Source: Wallemia ichthyophaga EXF-994 (Eukaryota; Fungi; Basidiomycota). Taken from it: a stretch of 32,000 nt of DNA. Position numbers and translations under genes: made by a program. Positions 765 to 10,355 of this stretch are shown here, one piece after another; positions within the stretch are counted from its first letter, which is position 1, and the number at the start of each line of letters is the position of its first letter. The stretch is from positions 60,001 through 92,000 of the forward strand of contig NW_008806284.1 in NCBI RefSeq assembly GCF_000400465.1. Direction: 5' to 3'. Below the pieces are notes generated by a model. It made no database searches. It was not told the origin of the DNA and saw nothing but the letters and a program-made list of their open reading frames with translations.

Positions 765-3546
765 TCACTCCTCTTCATCATGCTGGTCATCACGCTTGAA
801 CAGATCGAGCATCTCATTCAATCCAAGCTTGTTAGACACCGCCTTGCCGCTGAGTGCTGCCTCGGCCAGTTCGCGCTTTTTCTTTTGAAGCTCGAGTATA
901 CGATCTTCTACAGTCTGCACCACCGTTAATTTGTATATATGCACTTCGCGTTTCTGTCCGAGACGGTGGGCTCTGTCGAAAGCTTGGTCTTCGAGCGCAG
1001 GATTCCACCACATGTCAGACAAAATGACGCGCGAACATATATTCAGATTAAGCCCTGTCGATCCGGCTTTGAAGGATATCAGTATGACTGATGGTGTGTT
1101 AGAGAATCAACTTTTGCACTCAAGCATAAGCGTAAGCATATGCCCTAGCATTGGCACTCCCACCTGTTGTCTTATCATCCGACTTTATCTGATTAAGCAC
1201 AGCCTCGCGTTCGATTGGATTCATAGATCCATCGTATCTTACGTACTTGTAGCCAGCTGCTTTGACGAAGCTTTCAATGATATCGAGGAATGTGACGAAT
1301 TGTGAGAATATGATGGTTTTCTCTGGGGTATTCGTGATTTTGTGGCTGCTATTTTTGTCCTTGTGATTCTTGTGATTCTTTTGATCCTTATGACCGCTCT
1401 TGTTGTCCTTCTTTTCAGTGTCCTTTCTCAATTTCGCTTCCTTCCTTTCCTGCTCCCGATCGTCATCACTTTCACTGAGCACAATCTGCTGACTCTTTTT
1501 CTTCAGGATTGATTTCTTGCTTTTACTCTTCTCGCTTTTCTCGTTCTTCTCAACGCGCTTTCTGTCATCGTCATCCGCCTTTTTTATGTCCATCGACGCT
1601 GTACGCTTGATAATTGTGTCAAGATCGTCATTTTCGCTGCTACTGATATCTATAGCTTTAGACGGGAGGCCAGCCGGATCGAGGCGCGTTTGAGGGGTGT
1701 GTGGAGTGTACGAATCTGTCTGTGTCTGTGTCTTCTGTTGTGATCGCCCTTTGGTGTTTGGTTTAATAGCAGTGCTAGTAGAAGCTGCAGCAACATCAGT
1801 AGCGCTATGCACCTCTTCCAAAATACGCATAATAGCTCTAATCTTTGCACTCTCCACCAACCCCGTCGCATCACCCGACTTATCAACTCCACTACTCCCT
1901 ACTACCTTCGCTTTTCCCTTGTCGATCTGTAGATCCTCATCGACATGCTTCTTCTCACCTACACCTAACCCAGTGAAAAGATCCGCGAGCTCATCCGCCT
2001 CTTTCTCATCCTCCTCTTCCTCCACTTTACCTGGCTGTTGTGACCGCATAGCCGGTTCGTTAGCGACAAAGTCATCCTTGCTGTAAGCGCGCGTGACGAG
2101 ATGTGGATGACAGCAAGCCTGTCTCAAACGGAGCAACAGAGTTAAGACGCTAGTGTACCTGCTATTAATAGCGCCCTCTGTCACGAACTTGCTGATAGTT
2201 TGCTGAGCGCGATCGTGAACGTTATCGTAGAATCTGCGCTCCTCCTCATCGAACAAGCACGCAACATCCGTAACATGCTTCGGGGGTAGTGTGATAAGCG
2301 CCGATCCGTCCTCATTCAAGGTGTTCTTTGTACGTCGCAGCATAACCAATTTGAGAATCAGCTGTAAACGCGCTATCGCCACTTTGACACGGCCACTTTT
2401 CATAGGCGTGCTAATGCGCGTCTTGAACTCGTCATAATGACGAAAAGGCTCTATGCGCAGGAAACGTAGCAACGCATAGAGCTCGTCGACGTTGTTCTGG
2501 ATGGGCGTACCCGTCAGACACCATCTGTAGCATGCAGATAGCCCCGCACATGCTATGCTCGTCTTACTCGTCCGGTTCTTGATGTTCTGTGCTTCGTCGA
2601 GCACAACGCGTTGGAAATTGCCCTCAAAAAGGGCGCAAAGAGGCTTCTTCTGCTTGCCAGTTTTACCCGTTTTGCTTTTGGTACCGCTACTGCTCTTACT
2701 TTTGCTGCCACCTGGCTCCTCACTCTCGTACACGCGGTGCTCAGATGACACCGTCTGGTAGCTCGTTACGACGACATCGTAATTGGCAAAGGCAGCAGCG
2801 TCGCGCGTGCGTGCTGCGCCGTGGTGTGTGAGTACGCGCACGCCGTCGCACTTACTTTTGGCCTCCGTCTCCCACTGCGCCACCACAGCTAGAGGTGCTA
2901 CGATGAGGGTAGTTTTGGACCACTCACGTACAACTTGCTTATCAGAGCTATTGGAGAGGATGAGTGCGAGAGTCTGGACAGTTTTCCCAAGTCCCATCTT
3001 AACGCTGTCAGAGTGAGCGAGTTGGATGTAAAACGCGCAACTCACATCATCAGCTAGAATACCGCCATGCTTATTAGATACGCCACTCTCGCGGTCGCGC
3101 ATCCAAGCTACACCGGCTATCTGGTGCTGGAGAAGGGTGATGTCGGGCATTCCAGGGATAGTTGCGGTGGATGGGAGATCAACATCGTCGTAATCAGCAG
3201 TCACGCCTGAAATGAGCTCGTTGAGGTGTTTGTTCGCCTCGCTGGAAGTCGTCGCCGTCGTCGTGTCTGAGGATGACGGCGTATCTTCTCGCGGGAGCGG
3301 CGTGACTGGGGGCAAGGAAACACTTGCTAGTGGGGGTGGCGATACCTGGTGGACTGCTACACGTGATGCCAATGGTTGTGGCGGGCGGGCGTAAAGGTTC
3401 TTGGATACAGGCGCTGCCCAGCCATTAGGTGCACGCTGTGGTATGCCGTATGTAGGTGGTGGTAGACCTGCTGGACGTGTACTCTGTGTACCTTGTGTGT
3501 TGTGTGTTTTGTGTGCACCGCGTGCGCCCTGGTTACCAGTATACAT
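765..3546 (-). CDS. SNF2-family DNA-dependent ATPase/helicase (Rad5/16-Uls1-TTF2-like); introns 2998-3045 and 1088-1163
   Basis: GGILADD|MGLGKT (Walker A after removing a 48-nt intron), LDEAQNIKN, LTGTPIQN, LLRLRQACCHP, KTIIFSQF, ISFKAGSTGLNL, WWNPALEDQAFDRAHRLGQ. Confidence 0.9.
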
Positions 3547-3653
3547 GACAGTATCTACTTAAAGACAAAGACACTACCCTGAAAACAAAGCAAATGTGAA
3601 ATAAATTTGTATCAACACGCTCATGACATTCAGATTCATACAAAAAGTATAGC

Positions 3654-4464
3654 TTAAGCCTCGCGAGTTTGTTGAGTACCACGTAACAAACCGGTACGTC
3701 TGGCAGCAATAAGACCAGCCTTTTGACCAGAAGGAGCATCTCTGGCGATGGTAGAGGCGTGACCAATGTGTTGGTGGTTACCACCACCGTGAGGGTGGTC
3801 TACTGGGTTCATGGCAACACCACGAGTACGTGGCCAGCAGTTTCTCTTGACCTTGAACTTGTGGTGAGCGGCACCAGCCTTGAGGAGAGGCTTGTCAATA
3901 CGACCACCACCAGCGACAATACCAATTGAAGCTCTGGATGAACCGACGACAGCCTTCTTAGCACCGGATGGAAGACGGATTCTAGTCTTACCGTCGACCT
4001 CAGAGTGACCGATGATGGTGGCGTAGTTGCCTGAAGCTCTAGCCAATGCACCTCTGTCACCAGACTTCTCCTCAATGTTGCAGATGATGGTACCTTCTGG
4101 CATTTGGGAGACAGGCAAAACGTTACCGACGGCGAGAGCAGCCTTCTTACCGCAGTAGACGAAAGCACCGGTGTAGAGACCTTCGGTAGCGATGAAGGTC
4201 TCGGTACGGAGCTTGTAGCGGTATTGGTCACGGAAAACGACACGAGCCAAAGGAGCACCACGGCCAGCGTCGTGGATGATCTCCTTGACTATACCACGGA
4301 TGTAGCCGTTACGCTCAGCATAGTCGTAAGTACGGAGCTGGGCTGGGGCCTTGTTGTGGTGGGTGTGAGACTGGAAAATACCACCGTTTTTACGCTGCGA
4401 TCTGATGACTCTACCCCTGTTTAAATTGTGAGAATATGTTAGGGCGCCTGAATAAATTTTACAT
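3654..4464 (-). CDS. RPL2: 60S ribosomal protein L2 (uL2); 46-nt intron 4417-4462 splits the start codon
   Basis: The spliced model reads [10 protein letters not shown]...[18 protein letters not shown]...[21 protein letters not shown], the canonical uL2 sequence. Confidence 0.97.
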
Positions 4465-4627
4465 TTCGTCGACGCTGTGGCTTGAAGCTAAGAGAGAAGG
4501 ATTTTTTAGAGAAGGATAAAAACTGAAAAAATTGAAGGTAAAAAGAGTGAATGGAGAGAGATATAAAAATGAATACAGATACCCATAATAGCCAGCTAAT
4601 TGAGTTGAATATGCGTGTGCGTCATGG

Positions 4628-5225
4628 TTAGTATGGCGTAATCACACCGTTAGAGCTGTTGTGGATATGTGAGTGGTTGTACACTACCAGCACTCCCACC
4701 CACCCTCTCATTGGACCTTGTTCAAATTGAATATTGATTTCTTCAACCAATGGCAATTTATTTGGTGATCTTGCGTAGAGAACGATATTCCCGTCGTTGC
4801 TATGGTATTAGTAGGTGGCTGATTGGAATAAATAGTACTCCCGCGCACCTCATCGTTGGCTGCTGCGTTGAAACTAGATTAGCTTCCTCAATCCCAGGAA
4901 GACGTGGTTTGGCGCCTGTCTGACGACGATGACGCGAGATTGTAAGTGGGTTGCTTTGGACGTATCAATTGAGTTTCATCTCTTCCAATTGCCTCCCATC
5001 TCCGCCCATCAACCCAGAAATGGCGATATCAAGAGATGGAAATGAAGCACTTACACGTCGTAGTTGAGTGAATGCGTTGAGGGCGTTGCGGGCATAGAGT
5101 TTAAACCACTCGTGGTAATATGTGCAGCTGCTGCGATTGCTGGAGGTGTGTCAAGTGGTGTGATGTGAGATGTGTGTGTGTGAGTGTTATCAGTACCCAC
5201 CGATAAAGGGGATCAAGGAGAACAT
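4628..5225 (-). CDS. Putative small secreted multi-exon protein (not in ORF track); internal splicing uncertain
   Basis: ATG at 5225 plus intron 5200-5141 gives a signal-peptide-like MFSLIPFIAIAAAAH. There is a further GTAAGT donor at 5054, and 48-49-nt introns with CTAAT/CTCAC branch sites near 4850-4800 and 4703-4656. No homolog recognised. Confidence 0.3.
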
Positions 5226-5307
5226 CGATGTAGCTGATAAAGAAGGAATTTAAATAAAGAAATCAATTTATCAACTTTACATAGACGACGGGGGTGTCTA
5301 GATTGAG

Positions 5308-6574: not shown

Positions 6575-7459
6575 ATGTCGAACAACCCCGTCTACACATA
6601 TCACGAAAAACAGCACTTCAATCTCGGTGGTAACTCGCGTAAGCGTAAGATCGGGATTGAGTCGCTGCGCCGATTCGACCATTGTGCGCTATGCCTCGGC
6701 GTAGCACGCGAGGCGACGAGTACCCCGAGGGGAATTATATACTGTAAAGAGTGCATATATGCGGATCTGTTAGCGCAAAAGCAGGAGATAAAGGCTGCGA
6801 AAACCACCCTGAAGCAGCTCAAGCAGGCGCAGAAGGATGGTTCAGCAAGACGAGCAGAAATTAGCAAACAGGGAAATGTGGAGAGGTTCGATAAGGCGCA
6901 GAAGCTGGGTGGGGACAATTCACAATCTCAATCGCAATCGCAACCAAACTCAAGCTCACAATCTCACCCCACTCTACCCAGCTTTTGGCTGTCTTCTCTC
7001 CAGCCTAACATCAGCGATGAGCAGAATATTGCTGATCGGATACGCGCGTTAGAGGCCCAGAAGATGGTGACTCTCTGTCGACAGGCTACCCCTCCTCATC
7101 CACTCACACTCAAGGATCTCACGCCTGTCAAGATTAAGTACACTGACAGCGCACGCGATGTTGCTGTGTGCAGTGGATGCAATAGGACACTTAACAATTC
7201 AACTAGAATGCTTCTCACTAAATCTTGTCATAATCTTCTCTGCGGCTATTGCATAGACACTCTCTACACACCATCGCAGCAGTGCCCTGTATGCGATGAA
7301 AAGGTTGATACAAATCCAGACGATTTGATTAGGATATCCGTTGAAGGTTGGCTATTTCATTTGATTCTATTCACTCACTCACACCTTCCAGGCACCGGTT
7401 TCGCTGGTGGTGGCGGTGTTATGCTCAAGAAGAGAACAGGAACACTCGGGCTCAATTAG
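6575..7459 (+). CDS. NOSIP-like protein (N-terminal U-box/RING-like region, C-terminal RING); in-frame intron 7347-7391
   Basis: VYTYHEK, FDHCALCL...G.IYCKECIYADLL, C-terminal CSGC...CHNLLCGYC...CPVC, and EG|TGFAGGG after removing a 45-nt intron. Confidence 0.75.
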   Translation: MSNNPVYTYHEKQHFNLGGNSRKRKIGIESLRRFDHCALCLGVAREATSTPRGIIYCKECIYADLLAQKQEIKAAKTTLKQLKQAQKDGSARRAEISKQGNVERFDKAQKLGGDNSQSQSQSQPNSSSQSHPTLPSFWLSSLQPNISDEQNIADRIRALEAQKMVTLCRQATPPHPLTLKDLTPVKIKYTDSARDVAVCSGCNRTLNNSTRMLLTKSCHNLLCGYCIDTLYTPSQQCPVCDEKVDTNPDDLIRISVEGWLFHLILFTHSHLPGTGFAGGGGVMLKKRTGTLGLN

Positions 7460-7573
7460 TTTGCTAATGTGTATTATTTATATAGAGTACATTTCTCGTT
7501 GCATCGCTTTCATGTCCTGTTTTCTTGCATTAGCTAACGCGCCAACGCACCATACACACCCCAGTTACACCAG

Positions 7574-7644
7574 TGTATCAGTAAAAGCGTTTAAAGTTTG
7601 ACTTCATGTGTTTGCAGAGATTGTTCACAATACCATCATGTTGT
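7574..7644 (-). ncRNA. Box C/D snoRNA, snR52-like (25S A-loop Um2921-equivalent guide), downstream copy
   Basis: Box C ATGATGG (7639-7633), guide GTGAACAATCT followed by D' CTGC, box D CTGA (7581-7578). The guide is complementary to the conserved LSU sequence GGAUUGUUCAC, and the fifth base from D' pairs with the A-loop U. Confidence 0.8.
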
Positions 7645-7856
7645 GTGCGCTGTGGGGTGTGCTGGATGTACACAAACCCACCTCATTGTCTCATCACCAT
7701 ATTTCGTTAACGTTTACTGGAAATTCCTGTCTTGGTCGTTTGTTAGTTGGGTTCAAAACGTCCCTCAGACTCCGCGACCGCTCTTCAATGTCAGCGAATA
7801 AGCGTTATAAAGAGTTGACTTCATGTGTTTGCAGAGATTGTTCACAAAACCATCAT
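7598..7856. repeat. 42-bp direct repeat (7598-7639 and 7815-7856, one mismatch), the duplicated core of the two snR52-like snoRNAs
   Basis: TTGACTTCATGTGTTTGCAGAGATTGTTCACAA(T/A)ACCATCAT occurs twice. Confidence 0.95.
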
Positions 7857-7861
7857 TCGAG
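7786..7861 (-). ncRNA. Box C/D snoRNA, snR52-like, upstream copy
   Basis: Box C ATGATGG (7856-7850), GTGAACAATCT-CTGC, box D CTGA (7794-7791). Flanked by a 9-bp inverted repeat GACCGCTCT (7776-7784) / AGAGCGGTC (7862-7870). Confidence 0.85.
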
Positions 7862-7951
7862 AGAGCGGTCTGGATTCTGAATAAATTGTACTCACCAATT
7901 GCGTTAGTTTTGCTTCTCAGTTACACCAACTCCTTCGCTCTCCACACATGA

Positions 7952-8033
7952 TTACATTTCAGTTAGAGCTAATACATTTTATCCCTCCTCTTCTCAATGA
8001 GAATCGAGTGATAATAACTTTTCATCCTTGTAA
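7952..8033 (-). ncRNA. Box C/D snoRNA, U44/SNORD44-like (18S Am166-equivalent guide)
   Basis: Box C variant AGGATGA (8028-8022), box D CTGA (7962-7959), 5-bp terminal stem TTACA/TGTAA. The guide ATGTATTAGCTCTA is complementary to conserved 18S UAGAGCUAAUACAU. The 3' end TTAGCTCTAACTGA matches SNORD44 as recalled. Confidence 0.8.
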
Positions 8034-8154
8034 ACGAGTGTGGAGTCGTCGAAGAAAGTGATAAAGCAATGGTAAAACTAACTTACATCTTCATCCTAAA
8101 AACGATAATTAGCAAGAACACTAATAATAACACCACGCAAGACACCATCACAAA

Positions 8155-8263
8155 CACCCTCAGAGAGAAGATTTATCCCTGATAATGTCGGTCATCAATC
8201 CGCGAGTGATGAATCACACCAGAAATCCCCACAAGAATGAATAGCGATTATCATCTTGGAGTG
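8155..8263 (-). ncRNA. Box C/D snoRNA, mgU6-47/SNORD7-like (U6 snRNA Am47 guide)
   Basis: Box D CTGA (8163-8160) is preceded by AATCTTCTCT, complementary to U6 AGAGAAGAUU; the D+5 rule hits the last A of ACAGAGA. Candidate box C ATGATAA (8254-8248), C' TTGATGA (8198-8192), stem CACTC/GGGTG. Confidence 0.75.
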
Positions 8264-8314
8264 AGACTAGCGAGTGGTGTCTAGCGTGAGGTGTGAATTG
8301 CACTCACATTGCAA

Positions 8315-9233
8315 CTAGACATCTTTCACGATTGGTGAGTTGTAACGCTGTGCGTAGCCAGTCCAGCTTTCATCGTAAATGGAGCTATGACCTCCAATAA
8401 CTTCCAGGGCAAGAGCTACGATCGCGGCTGTCATCCCTGAGCCGCAACTAGTAATGACATCTTTCTTCCCTTCGAGGACCATATCCAGCTGCTGCTTTCC
8501 GAGTGTATTTTCAAACACCGCACGAAGCTCTTCAGGGCTCTTAAGCTGGCCATCCTGAAGCAATTGGGGAAAAGCGAGCGAGAGAGCACCAGGCATATGA
8601 CCCGACGACAGGCCCTGTCTGGGTTCAGGCGCCGCGCCCGCAAAGCGAGGCTGCGGACGAGCATCGAGTATGACGCTATCTTTACGCTCAATGGTGTTGA
8701 GAATATCTATGTGGTCCTTGATAAAGTTCTTCTCCAGTGTAGGTACGGGGTACTCTGAGCGTTGGGAAACATACTCTCCCGACTCTACAGGTAAACCTTC
8801 CCTCTCATAGGCTGGGAGACCACCGTCGAGGACAGCGACATTTGGATGACCCATTGCGCGAAAGGTGAAAGCAGCGCGTGGAGCGCTAAAAACACCGACT
8901 GTGTCATAGAGGAGGACTTGAGAGTTGCGCTCAATTCCCAATTGGGAACACGCTGATGCAAAAATTGCAGGTGAGGGGAGCATATGACCGACAAAGCCAT
9001 CTGGGTGGTTCGAAGCAATTTTGTCGAGATCCCAACGCCTTGCTTGAGGGAGGTGCTTGGAGAGGTACTCGTCGTTTGGGTTGCGCGCGCTGTTAGGCAT
9101 GTGCCACGAAGCATCCTGGCAGAGATGAGCGTGAGCAAGAGCAGAGACCATCTCAGCTGCTCAGCTTGCTCACCAACGCAATGAAGTGCTTGAGGTCGCG
9201 CAGCTGGCGTGCTTTGACAATTCTCGTAGTCAT
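8315..9233 (-). CDS. TUM1: Tandem-rhodanese thiosulfate/3-mercaptopyruvate sulfurtransferase; intron 9116-9173
   Basis: L|DASWHMP, HMLPS, SAPRAAFTF...LDGGLP, LDARP...GHMPGA, catalytic SCGSGMTA, IYDESW. Confidence 0.9.
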
Positions 9234-9284
9234 CGTCGTTGCAGTTCAAGAAGCTTTTCTTGATTTTCTGTCAAATAACTTGAA

Positions 9285-10355
9285 ATGGAAAATAAAAAGT
9301 TGAACTTTGCAATCGCTAAATACCTCAAAAGCGCACAAGCTGGGTTAAGCGGCGAGAAGCAGGAATCACTCAGCGTTGCAATTGAGTCGTTGGAGGATGT
9401 CTTCGAGGTGGATGACACGCAGGCAGGTGCTTTGGATAGCCCAGTGGATTTGGCAGCCTTGTTCAAGAGTGCGCAAGTCGCTGAGAAGCCACAAGCAGCA
9501 GCTGGGCCAGCTAACCAATCAGAGCCATCCGCTCAAGACATGGCCAAAGCAGACACACTCAAGGCTCAAGGCAATGCCCTCATGTCTGCGCAGAAGTACC
9601 AAGAAGCTGTAGACGCTTACACCCAAGCTATAGCCCTGCACTCCACCAACAAGATTCTCTATTCGTACGTGTACACTTCCTTCTAGAATGTACCCTGCTC
9701 ACTTGCTCACAGCAACAGAGCAGCTGCGTACTCGCAGGCTGGTGACCAAGACGCATCCATCGCAGACGCTAAGAAGGCACTCGAAATTGACCCGGCTTTC
9801 GCCAGAGCGTACTCGAGATTAGGTCACGCGTACTTCAACGCTAAGCAGTACGATAATGCCGTCAGCGCATATGAGGATGGTCTCAAGTATGATACCGACA
9901 ATCAGACCATGAAGTCTAGCCTCATCACCGCTAGATCCAAGGTAGGCGGCTCTGTTCAACAGAGAGAATCTCAGGATGCCGGCGCAGGTGCTGGTGCTGG
10001 TGCTGGTGCTGGCGGTGGTGGTATGCCTGATCTCTCAGCTCTCGCAGGCATGTTTGGCGGCGCTGGCGGTGGTGCTGGCGGCGGCGGCGGCGGCGGTATG
10101 CCTGATATCGGTGCTTTACTCAATAACCCAATGATGCGCCAGATGGCTCAATCGATGATGTCCAACGGCGGTATGGAGAGACTTATGTCTAACCCTGGTC
10201 TCAGGAACATGGCGGAGAACATGAGAAGTGGTGGACAGATGCCATCCATCGAGGAGTTGGCAGGTAACCCCGAACTCAGAGGTCTCGCTGAGTCTTTCGG
10301 TGCTGGTGGTGCTGGTGGTGCTGGCCAAGGCAATCCTCCACCAGGCAATGCTTAA
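9285..10355 (+). CDS. SGT2: Small glutamine-rich TPR co-chaperone Sgt2; intron 9665-9712
   Basis: N-terminal dimerisation region (ESLSVAIESLEDVF), TPRs (KAQGNALM...YS|NRAAAY...AYSRLG), Gly-rich GGMPD repeats and a DP/STI1-like C-terminus. Confidence 0.9.

Follow-up and report, generated by a model that had tools for sequence, protein, structure and literature searches.

Four box C/D snoRNAs downstream of TUM1 in Wallemia ichthyophaga, probably hosted by 3' untranslated introns

The interval between TUM1 and a NOSIP-like gene

The stretch of DNA analysed here (the window) is a 32-kb segment of Wallemia ichthyophaga EXF-994, contig NW_008806284.1, positions 60,001 to 92,000. On its minus strand lies TUM1, a member of the TUM1/3-mercaptopyruvate sulfurtransferase (MST) family; in yeast, Tum1 has a role in tRNA thiolation. 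The gene starts with an ATG at 9233, ends with a TAG at 8317-8315 and encodes, in two exons, a product of 286 amino acids. This product is 100% identical to the W. ichthyophaga rhodanese-domain protein E3P89_02289, contains two stretches matching Pfam Rhodanese, and resembles both yeast Tum1 (PDB 3utn, E 1.7e-34) and human MPST (4jgt, E 1.8e-46) over nearly their full length. The near-full-length matches justify the family label, and the sulfurtransferase identity given in a preliminary description of this DNA, made from the sequence alone, is upheld. Downstream of TUM1 lies a convergent NOSIP-like gene on the plus strand, whose stop codon ends at 7459. The distance from the TUM1 stop to this gene is 852 nucleotides (nt), whereas neighbouring gaps in the W. 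ichthyophaga assemblies are 49-420 nt. No gene is annotated in the 852-nt gap in these assemblies, in agreement with the earlier suggestion that its content had been missed by annotation.

Inside this gap we found four box C/D small nucleolar RNAs (snoRNAs), all on the minus strand. They are denoted A, B, C and D, in order of increasing distance from TUM1, and D is a paralog of C. The features of the locus, including the predicted introns and exons around the snoRNAs, are listed in Table 1.

Table 1. Coding, snoRNA and predicted splicing features of the TUM1 locus in window coordinates. CDS, coding sequence; UTR, untranslated region; a slash within letters marks a splice site.
Feature	Position	Strand	Details
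TUM1/3-mercaptopyruvate sulfurtransferase CDS	8315..9233	-	exons 9233-9174 and 9115-8315; from translation
TUM1 coding intron	9173-9116	-	58 nt
3' UTR stub TTGCAAT	8308..8314	-	7 nt, between stop codon and first donor
Predicted intron 1	8096..8307	-	212 nt; carries snoRNA A; donor GTGAGT 8307-8302; branch site CTAAT 8112-8108; TTTTTAG ending at 8096
snoRNA A	8259-8156	-	~100 nt; model R1, E 1.4e-25; donor to C box 53 nt; D box to branch A 51 nt
snoRNA A boxes		-	C AUGAUAA 8254-8248; C' UGAUGA 8197-8192; D CUGA 8163-8160
Predicted micro-exon GATGAAGAT	8087..8095	-	9 nt; conserved boundaries
Predicted intron 2, 5' part	7896..8086	-	carries snoRNA B; donor GTAAGT 8086-8081; branch site CTAAC 7907-7903
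snoRNA B	8030-7956	-	~75 nt; model R2, E 9e-19; donor to C box 58 nt; D box to branch A 55 nt
snoRNA B boxes		-	C AGGAUGA 8028-8022; D CUGA 7962-7959
Predicted intron 3	7727..7895	-	169 nt (165 nt via AAG/ at 7731); carries snoRNA C; donor GTGAGT 7895-7890; branch site CTAAC 7746-7742; tandem AAG/ACAG/ 7731/7727
snoRNA C	7859-7787	-	~70 nt; model R3, E 2.5e-23; donor to C box 39 nt; D box to branch A 48 nt
snoRNA C boxes		-	C AUGAUGG 7856-7850; D' guide 7845-7835 plus CUGC; C' AUGAAGU 7824-7818; D 7794-7791
snoRNA C external stem	7870-7862 / 7784-7776	-	GACCGCUCU / AGAGCGGUC
Predicted internal exon	7682..7726	-	most likely 45 nt; alternative 9-nt GAATTTCCA 7726-7718
Predicted intron 4	7517..7681	-	165 nt; carries snoRNA D; donor GTGGGT 7681-7676; branch site CTAAT 7533-7529; AAAACAG ending at 7517
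snoRNA D	7642-7575	-	paralog of C; ~65 nt; model R3, E 3.1e-19; donor to C box 42 nt; D box to branch A 48 nt
snoRNA D boxes		-	C 7639-7633; D' guide 7628-7618 plus CUGC; C' 7607-7601; D 7581-7578
snoRNA D external stem	7661-7653 / 7563-7555	-	CACACCCCA / UGGGGUGUG
Predicted last non-coding exon	7440..7516	-	end undefined; ATAAAT poly(A)-like motif 7481-7476; overlaps NOSIP-like 3' end

The four snoRNAs are conserved across Wallemia and enclosed by compensated stems

Profile models of the snoRNAs (R1, R2 and R3) were built from other species only, without the window sequence. Scanned across the 32-kb window they matched the four snoRNA sites and nothing else, exactly where the preliminary description had placed four C/D RNAs. 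We aligned the interval from the TUM1 stop to the NOSIP-like gene of W. ichthyophaga, W. hederae, Wallemia sp. (Logan assembly) and W. mellicola; the TUM1 proteins of the last three are 82%, 87% and 77% identical, respectively, to that of the window. In this alignment the four snoRNA islands are 70-93% identical as against 23-51% for the spacers. All four RNAs end with the D box CUGA, and their C boxes (AUGAUAA, AGGAUGA and AUGAUGG) are invariant across species. A fifth taxon, an AT-rich metagenome relative (ENA contigs L015:1-1406 and L016:1-1388) with a TUM1 protein only 60% identical to that of the window, retains the SGTA-TUM1 synteny together with a homologue of snoRNA A in the corresponding intron.

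The sequences flanking each snoRNA were compared in 18 copies (five of A, five of B and eight of C/D), by matching the 30 nt that precede the C box to the 30 nt that follow the D box. The flanks pair in 18/18 copies, with predicted duplex energies ranging from -13.9 to -32.5 kcal/mol and a cognate mean of -24.4 kcal/mol, versus -12.3 +/- 5.8 for non-cognate flanks. The cognate partner ranked first in 14 of the 18 copies, and in 20,000 permutations the observed mean was never attained. The stem sequences are unrelated among copies and species (compare the external stems of C and D in Table 1), and because they differ in every copy, the pairing must be kept by compensation.

Thus C and D boxes together with a terminal stem are present, and there are antisense elements of at least 10 nt that place the fifth nucleotide opposite a known methylated residue, as described below. 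Judged by this comparison of sequences, the four RNAs are genuine conserved box C/D snoRNAs.

A scan for further snoRNAs in the window, limited to D-box rRNA guides and not extended to D' guides, returned snoRNA B only. We also observed a fifth snoRNA in W. mellicola, denoted B2 (L010:5286-5358), which arose as a tandem duplicate of B; its 18S guide is the same (AAGUAUUAGCUCUAG, in front of CUGA), and its D' is a canonical CUGA. A 7-nt micro-exon, ACGTAGT, precedes the GTGAGT intron that B2 has to itself.

Predicted targets in U6, 18S and 25S RNA

Targets were assigned by the fifth-nucleotide (box-D+5) rule. Ribosomal RNA (rRNA) targets were checked against the rDNA of other eukaryotes, and U6 against the Rfam consensus and the human U6 printed in papers.

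The D guide of snoRNA A, AAUCUUCUCU followed by CUGA (8173-8160), is letter-for-letter the Rfam snoU6-47/snoZ30/snoZ30a consensus. It forms 10-11 bp with U6 and sets the fifth nucleotide against the final A of the ACAGAGA box, a residue that is methylated in human (A47) and in Schizosaccharomyces pombe (A41, guided by snoZ30). By the fifth-nucleotide rule snoRNA A is predicted to specify 2'-O-methylation of U6 A47 (human numbering). The search for rRNA targets of snoRNA A yielded only scattered chance 9-mers, consistent with a U6-only guide.

Upstream, snoRNA A carries a second element, UCAUUCUUGUG (8240-8230), followed by an invariant GGGA and without a conserved rRNA complement. Pairing of 9-11 bp is possible between this element and U6 CAAGGAUGA, a stretch given for human U6 in PMC5822900, and would bring the equivalent of human A70/S. 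pombe A64 opposite the fifth position. Methylation is known at both residues; in S. pombe, that of A64 depends on sno530, an atypical RNA of its own. The duplex has moved by a few pairs in W. mellicola and in the metagenome relative, while its register to the following 4-mer is retained. The extended form of the pairing uses the S. pombe U6 sequence. As a lead, the second element may be a guide for U6 A70/A64.

In snoRNA B, AUGUAUUAGCUCUA followed by (A)CUGA pairs perfectly, over 14 bp, with 18S UAGAGCUAAUACAU as it stands in eukaryotic rDNA contigs, and the guide is identical to the SNORD44 consensus AUUAGCUCUAaCUGA. The A at its fifth position corresponds to human A166 and Neurospora crassa A161, which are guided by U44 and CD32, and snoRNA B is predicted to specify methylation of the A166 equivalent. 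Its 5' element AAAGUUAUUAU (8021-8011) also has a complement in 18S, the motif UCAUAAUAACUU, which is widely conserved and lies ~100-130 nt 3' of the A166 site. We considered this element as a methylation guide and dropped it; its distance to the putative D' (UCGA/UUGA) varies between species.

The guide shared by snoRNAs C and D, GUGAACAAUCU followed by CUGC, pairs with 25S GGAUUGUUCAC over 11 bp including one G-U, and snoRNA C is complementary to the fungal-type 25S sequence GGTAAGCGTTGGATTGTTCAC. The fifth position faces the U preceding the only UG of the A-loop, that is, the equivalent of yeast U2921. This residue, the snR52 site, corresponds to Escherichia coli U2552 and is the universally conserved A-loop U (PMC11121408). 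Both C and D are predicted to specify its methylation. On the D side of these snoRNAs, AACGCUU(A) is conserved (within 7592-7583 in snoRNA D) and complementary to 25S UAAGCGUU directly 5' of the target, as is the element AACGCUUA of snoRNA C (7806-7799). The distance of AACGCUU(A) to the D box is 6 to 9 nt depending on the copy, and because it varies we read the motif as accessory pairing rather than as a second guide. We infer that the pairing is of the kind reported to stimulate methylation. Taken together, the antisense elements to U6, 18S and 25S named in the preliminary description are borne out, and each now has a predicted residue.

Splice signals frame each snoRNA

The first donor, GTGAGT at 8307-8302, lies 7 nt after the TUM1 TAG, as noted before. 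The donor and the branch site of intron 1 and its AG/GAT acceptor are conserved in the four Wallemia species. The homologous first micro-exons of the other species are 10-15 nt long and begin with GAT; only the AG/GAT...GT boundaries are shared, which fits a non-coding exon.

In the window, an AG follows 12-13 nt past the branch A for snoRNAs A, C and D. Across the 18 copies from five taxa, a GTRRGT-type hexamer is found 28-79 nt upstream in every one (18/18), and 16 have a CTRAY-type branch site 35-61 nt past the D box with an AG 9-24 nt beyond. In the other two, a branch-like site is seen by eye ~29 nt (B2 of W. mellicola) and ~60 nt (snoRNA A of the metagenome relative) past the D box. By our own estimate a GT[AG]AGT hexamer occurs by chance in ~2% of 50-nt windows. 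The donor and branch distances resemble those of N. crassa intronic snoRNAs (PMC2780460). The snoRNA introns are 165-212 nt long versus 45-58 nt for those nearby coding introns that could be checked; the contrast in length drawn in the preliminary description thus stands, within a narrower range than the 45-76 nt it gave for coding introns. As far as motifs can tell, each snoRNA is framed by splice signals at intronic-snoRNA spacing, and the layout of a snoRNA host gene is present in the window.

Two of the proposed exons fared differently. The 9-nt micro-exon GATGAAGAT is supported by boundaries conserved in four species. The second, GAATTTCCA, presupposes a donor GTAAAC at 7717, 78 nt before the C box of snoRNA D; GTGGGT at 7681 is 42 nt before that C box and aligns with the GTGAG donors of other species. 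The last donor is thus more likely at 7681 than at 7717, which makes the 9-nt GAATTTCCA doubtful: the last intron probably starts at GTGGGT 7681 and the exon probably measures 45 nt. The last junction, given previously as 7718/7516, would accordingly be replaced by 7682/7516. The last exon shows weak conservation of GATGCAACGA.

In the metagenome relative, a 26-nt exon follows the snoRNA A intron, and the contig then ends at GTGATGA, a possible donor or C box.

The B intron has no acceptor of its own

The introns of snoRNAs A, C and D each have a donor, a branch site and an AG. The proposal of one snoRNA per long intron is supported for these three and doubtful for snoRNA B, whose intron is without an acceptor of its own. 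Its branch site CTAAC (7907-7903) is followed after 7 nt by the next donor at 7895, and there is no AG between them. In all four Wallemia species, CTAAC stands 6-14 nt before the next 5' splice site without an AG (window 7907-7890; L003:5329-5345, L004:5204-5221, L010:5384-5407).

Since the B intron is without its own AG, the junction 8087/7726 listed in the preliminary description would span two snoRNAs. Prior removal of the C intron, at the first AG past its own branch site, would in all four species leave an AG at 12-19 nt from the B branch A; the joined acceptor of W. mellicola would then read UUUUUUUCAG. An AG within 4-10 nt is expected by chance in ~40% of cases, and tandem AGs alone are weak evidence for nesting. 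The arrangement is compatible with nested, stwintron-like splicing giving 8087/7726, or with a single 360-nt intron carrying two snoRNAs, and the junction proposed earlier fits only these two schemes.

TUM1 as the probable host

The distance from the TUM1 stop to the first donor is 1 nt in W. mellicola, 7 nt in W. ichthyophaga, 8 nt in Wallemia sp., 10 nt in W. hederae and 14 nt in the metagenome relative. With the donor 1-14 nt past the stop in five taxa, the first exon of any separate host must lie inside the TUM1 CDS in every lineage. There is no room for a first exon outside it, and it is simplest to take the TUM1 pre-mRNA for the host. We put at roughly 0.7 the probability that the TUM1-NOSIP gap is a multi-intron snoRNA host starting inside the TUM1 transcription unit, co-transcription of TUM1 and the snoRNAs being suggested by this geometry.

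In the pathway that this suggests, RNA polymerase II would transcribe TUM1 and carry on beyond the stop codon, and the introns starting 7 nt past the stop would be spliced out. The excised introns would be debranched and then trimmed by exonucleases to the box C/D snoRNA-protein particle (snoRNP), whose assembly the long stem of flanking sequences would aid. SnoRNA A would direct 2'-O-methylation of U6 at human A47/S. pombe A41 and, possibly through its second element, at human A70/S. pombe A64; snoRNA B would direct methylation of 18S at the human A166 equivalent. The paralogs C and D would direct methylation of the 25S A-loop U (yeast U2921), stabilised by the 8-nt accessory pairing 5' of the target. 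Co-transcription, splice junctions, snoRNA accumulation and methylations are all inferred from sequence.

Several observations weigh against this reading. The boxes are off consensus: the C boxes AUGAUAA, AGGAUGA and AUGAUGG each differ from RUGAUGA at one position, and the D' boxes read CUGC and GGGA. An Rfam scan of the whole window at the gathering score gave no match; scans of the individual snoRNAs gave sub-threshold local matches only (13-20 bits), none of them to snR52. The pairing partners named above are those of other organisms, not Wallemia's own rRNA and U6; a search of the sequences analysed turned up no Wallemia U6. A search for transcript-derived contigs encoding the exact TUM1 protein of W. 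ichthyophaga, W. hederae, Wallemia sp. or W. mellicola returned genomic contigs throughout. The missing acceptor of the B intron counts here as well. Finally, in many eukaryotes several junctions in a 3' UTR are expected to trigger nonsense-mediated decay (NMD), and mammalian snoRNA host transcripts are marked for it by junctions beyond the stop; this is awkward if the same RNA also has to yield TUM1 protein. We considered whether micro-exons keep the junctions within ~50 nt of the stop and so evade NMD, and dropped the idea: in W. hederae the exon between C and D is ~75 nt, as judged by eye from the alignment.

In E-value mode, Rfam on 1.2 kb reported only SNORD91 at E 2. The best Rfam match of snoRNA C is likewise SNORD91 (window 7862-7789, 19.8 bits, E 0.16 with a 91-nt query), most likely a chance match driven by box spacing and not by the guide. 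Given the strong comparative evidence and the poor transfer of snoRNA models from one phylum to another, the missing Rfam matches do not refute the snoRNAs. That the gap is an ordinary 3' UTR or intergenic spacer, with C/D-like motifs and complementarities arising by chance, would account for the lack of any Rfam family at the gathering score, but it is refuted by the comparative data and we regard it as hardly credible: models from other species match with E-values of 1e-19 to 1e-25, the flanking stems are compensatory, and the guides of A and B reproduce the consensus of curated families for sites where methylation is known.

The NMD problem speaks for another arrangement, in which the snoRNAs, though intronic, belong to an independent non-coding transcript of the UHG/GAS5 type, starting inside the 3' end of the TUM1 CDS or separately, with the TUM1 mRNA ending elsewhere, for example by polyadenylation inside an unspliced intron 1. 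Fungal snoRNA clusters are typically found in such non-coding UHG-like genes, as in clusters I-V of N. crassa (PMC2780460), and an AATAAA-like string does occur in the guide region of snoRNA A (8176-8171). Against an independent host stands the stop-to-donor distance of 1-14 nt, which would make its first exon overlap the TUM1 CDS in every lineage; moreover, the genome is very compact (gaps 49-420 nt) and offers no promoter-like gap. We consider this arrangement unlikely.

The flanking duplexes raise another possibility, in which splicing plays no part: an RNase III (Rnt1-type) would cleave, at the stems, a polycistronic precursor made by read-through or from a start of its own, and trimming would follow, as for polycistronic snoRNAs of yeast and plants. 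Each copy is enclosed by a duplex within the energy range given above, and plants, trypanosomatids and yeast offer well-known cases of polycistronic snoRNA clusters processed without splicing (PMC2780460). Yet the 16 of 18 copies with donor, branch-site and acceptor motifs at intronic-snoRNA spacing, and the conservation of the AG/GAT...GT boundaries but not of the exon sequence, would be unexpected if splicing were irrelevant, so that release by RNase III appears distinctly unlikely. An intron-borne cluster within the TUM1 transcription unit thus remains the reading we favour.

A stronger version of the favoured reading would make the TUM1 mRNA the obligatory carrier of the snoRNA cluster throughout Wallemia, with the A intron also in the distant relative, all snoRNAs in 3' UTR introns separated by micro-exons of 7-15 nt, B and C nested with C removed first, and snoRNA A a double guide for U6 A47 and A70, a task divided between two RNAs in fission yeast. 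That all of this holds at once is doubtful. Synteny, which the preliminary description proposed to check in related basidiomycetes, was found in the Wallemia species and the metagenome relative. In Phaffia and Mrakia, by contrast, the TUM1 loci (+/-3 kb) contained none of the guides and gave no model match. Among the taxa sampled, the linkage of TUM1 with the snoRNAs is found only in Wallemia and one close relative.

Neighbouring genes

Upstream of TUM1, the ATG of a divergent SGTA-like gene (plus strand, ~9285) lies ~51 nt from the TUM1 ATG (minus strand, 9233), making the site at 9231-9287 an extremely compact bidirectional promoter region. Elsewhere in the window (~1120-5228, minus strand; L001:8006 onwards) the deposited W. 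ichthyophaga models join uL2 (Ribosomal_L2_N/C) and a SNF2-family helicase into one product of 1,249 amino acids. In W. hederae and one W. mellicola assembly, uL2 alone has 355-373 amino acids, and the fusion is probably a merged gene model.

Significance

The locus contributes four snoRNA genes missed by annotation, and in W. mellicola a fifth, to a class of fungi that looked depleted of snoRNAs in the one large survey covering it, where, with W. sebi included, many snoRNAs were reported lost in the genus (PMC5824354); a term search of the survey text found no mention of host genes. It suggests that guides for U6 A47, 18S A166 and the 25S A-loop U are retained in an early-branching basidiomycete. 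If the favoured reading is right, TUM1 would be a clean conserved example of a protein-coding gene whose entire 3' UTR serves as a snoRNA host, and it raises the question of how its mRNA escapes, or uses, the decay triggered by junctions past the stop. The acceptor-less B intron would lend itself naturally to the study of ordered, nested splicing. In the annotation of compact fungal genomes, unusually large gaps between convergent genes appear worth a scan for intronic snoRNAs.

Comparison with known snoRNAs and host genes

The guide functions predicted here have precedents in fungi, namely CD11, CD32 and CD42 of N. crassa and snoZ30 of S. pombe. SnoRNA A shares its guide and D box AAUCUUCUCUCUGA with the mgU6-47/Z30 snoRNAs (human SNORD7, S. 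pombe snoZ30, N. crassa CD11; RF00288, RF01196, RF01221). It differs from them in its upstream element, which may address a second U6 site, and scores only 12.6-13.9 bits against cut-offs of 50-80 with their Rfam models, where the guide and D box alone align confidently. In CD11, furthermore, the U6 guide is on D' and is combined with rRNA guides. S. pombe sno530, the U6 A64 guide, resembles the second element of snoRNA A in that the 9-11 bp with CAAGGAUGA place the same A opposite the fifth nucleotide upstream of GGGA. It is, however, a separate atypical RNA, whereas in snoRNA A this function would be combined with the A47 guide and the D' would be non-canonical, a comparison made through non-Wallemia U6.

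SnoRNA B has the D guide and D box AUUAGCUCUAACUGA of SNORD44/U44 (Arabidopsis snoR18, N. crassa CD32) and the same 18S A as predicted target. With the SNORD44 model, snoRNA B scores 13.4 bits (cut-off 40), the match being local and confined to the guide and D box, and CD32 also guides 18S Um167 from D', a guide that snoRNA B is without. SnoRNAs C and D place at the fifth position the same A-loop U (25S U2921) as Saccharomyces cerevisiae snR52. Unlike snR52, they give no match to its Rfam model even at E 10 (91-nt query) and no complementarity to the region of 18S A420, the other target of that double guide, was found; their A-loop guide lies upstream of a degenerate D' (CUGC), and the D side has the accessory pairing rather than a second guide. 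The expectation that Rfam covariance models would identify SNORD7, SNORD44 and snR52 was therefore disappointed, with 13-14 bits against cut-offs of 40-80 for the first two and no match to the third. Because no Rfam threshold is reached and C and D fail the snR52 tests, we regard the Wallemia RNAs as functional counterparts and not as demonstrated family members.

The B and C introns may recall the stwintrons of fungi: in the nested scheme, the B intron could not be completed until the C intron, 7 nt past the B branch site, had been removed, as in consecutive nested splicing. In the stwintrons described, the inner intron splits a donor, branch or acceptor motif, whereas the Wallemia C intron sits between branch site and acceptor.

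With the multi-intron hosts, mammalian UHG and GAS5 and clusters I-V of N. crassa, the TUM1 locus shares one snoRNA per intron, short and poorly conserved exons, and similar distances to the splice sites (PMC2780460). These hosts contain only short, non-conserved open reading frames, while in Wallemia the first exon would be a complete conserved enzyme CDS, with all the snoRNA introns 3' of its stop. The guide functions are already known, and multi-intron hosts with one snoRNA per intron are standard in fungi and animals. What is unusual about the locus is its layout; the kind of gene is well known, and the mechanism is not new. What would be new is a complete conserved CDS as first exon, the placement of all snoRNA introns in the 3' UTR with micro-exons between them, and one intron without an acceptor.

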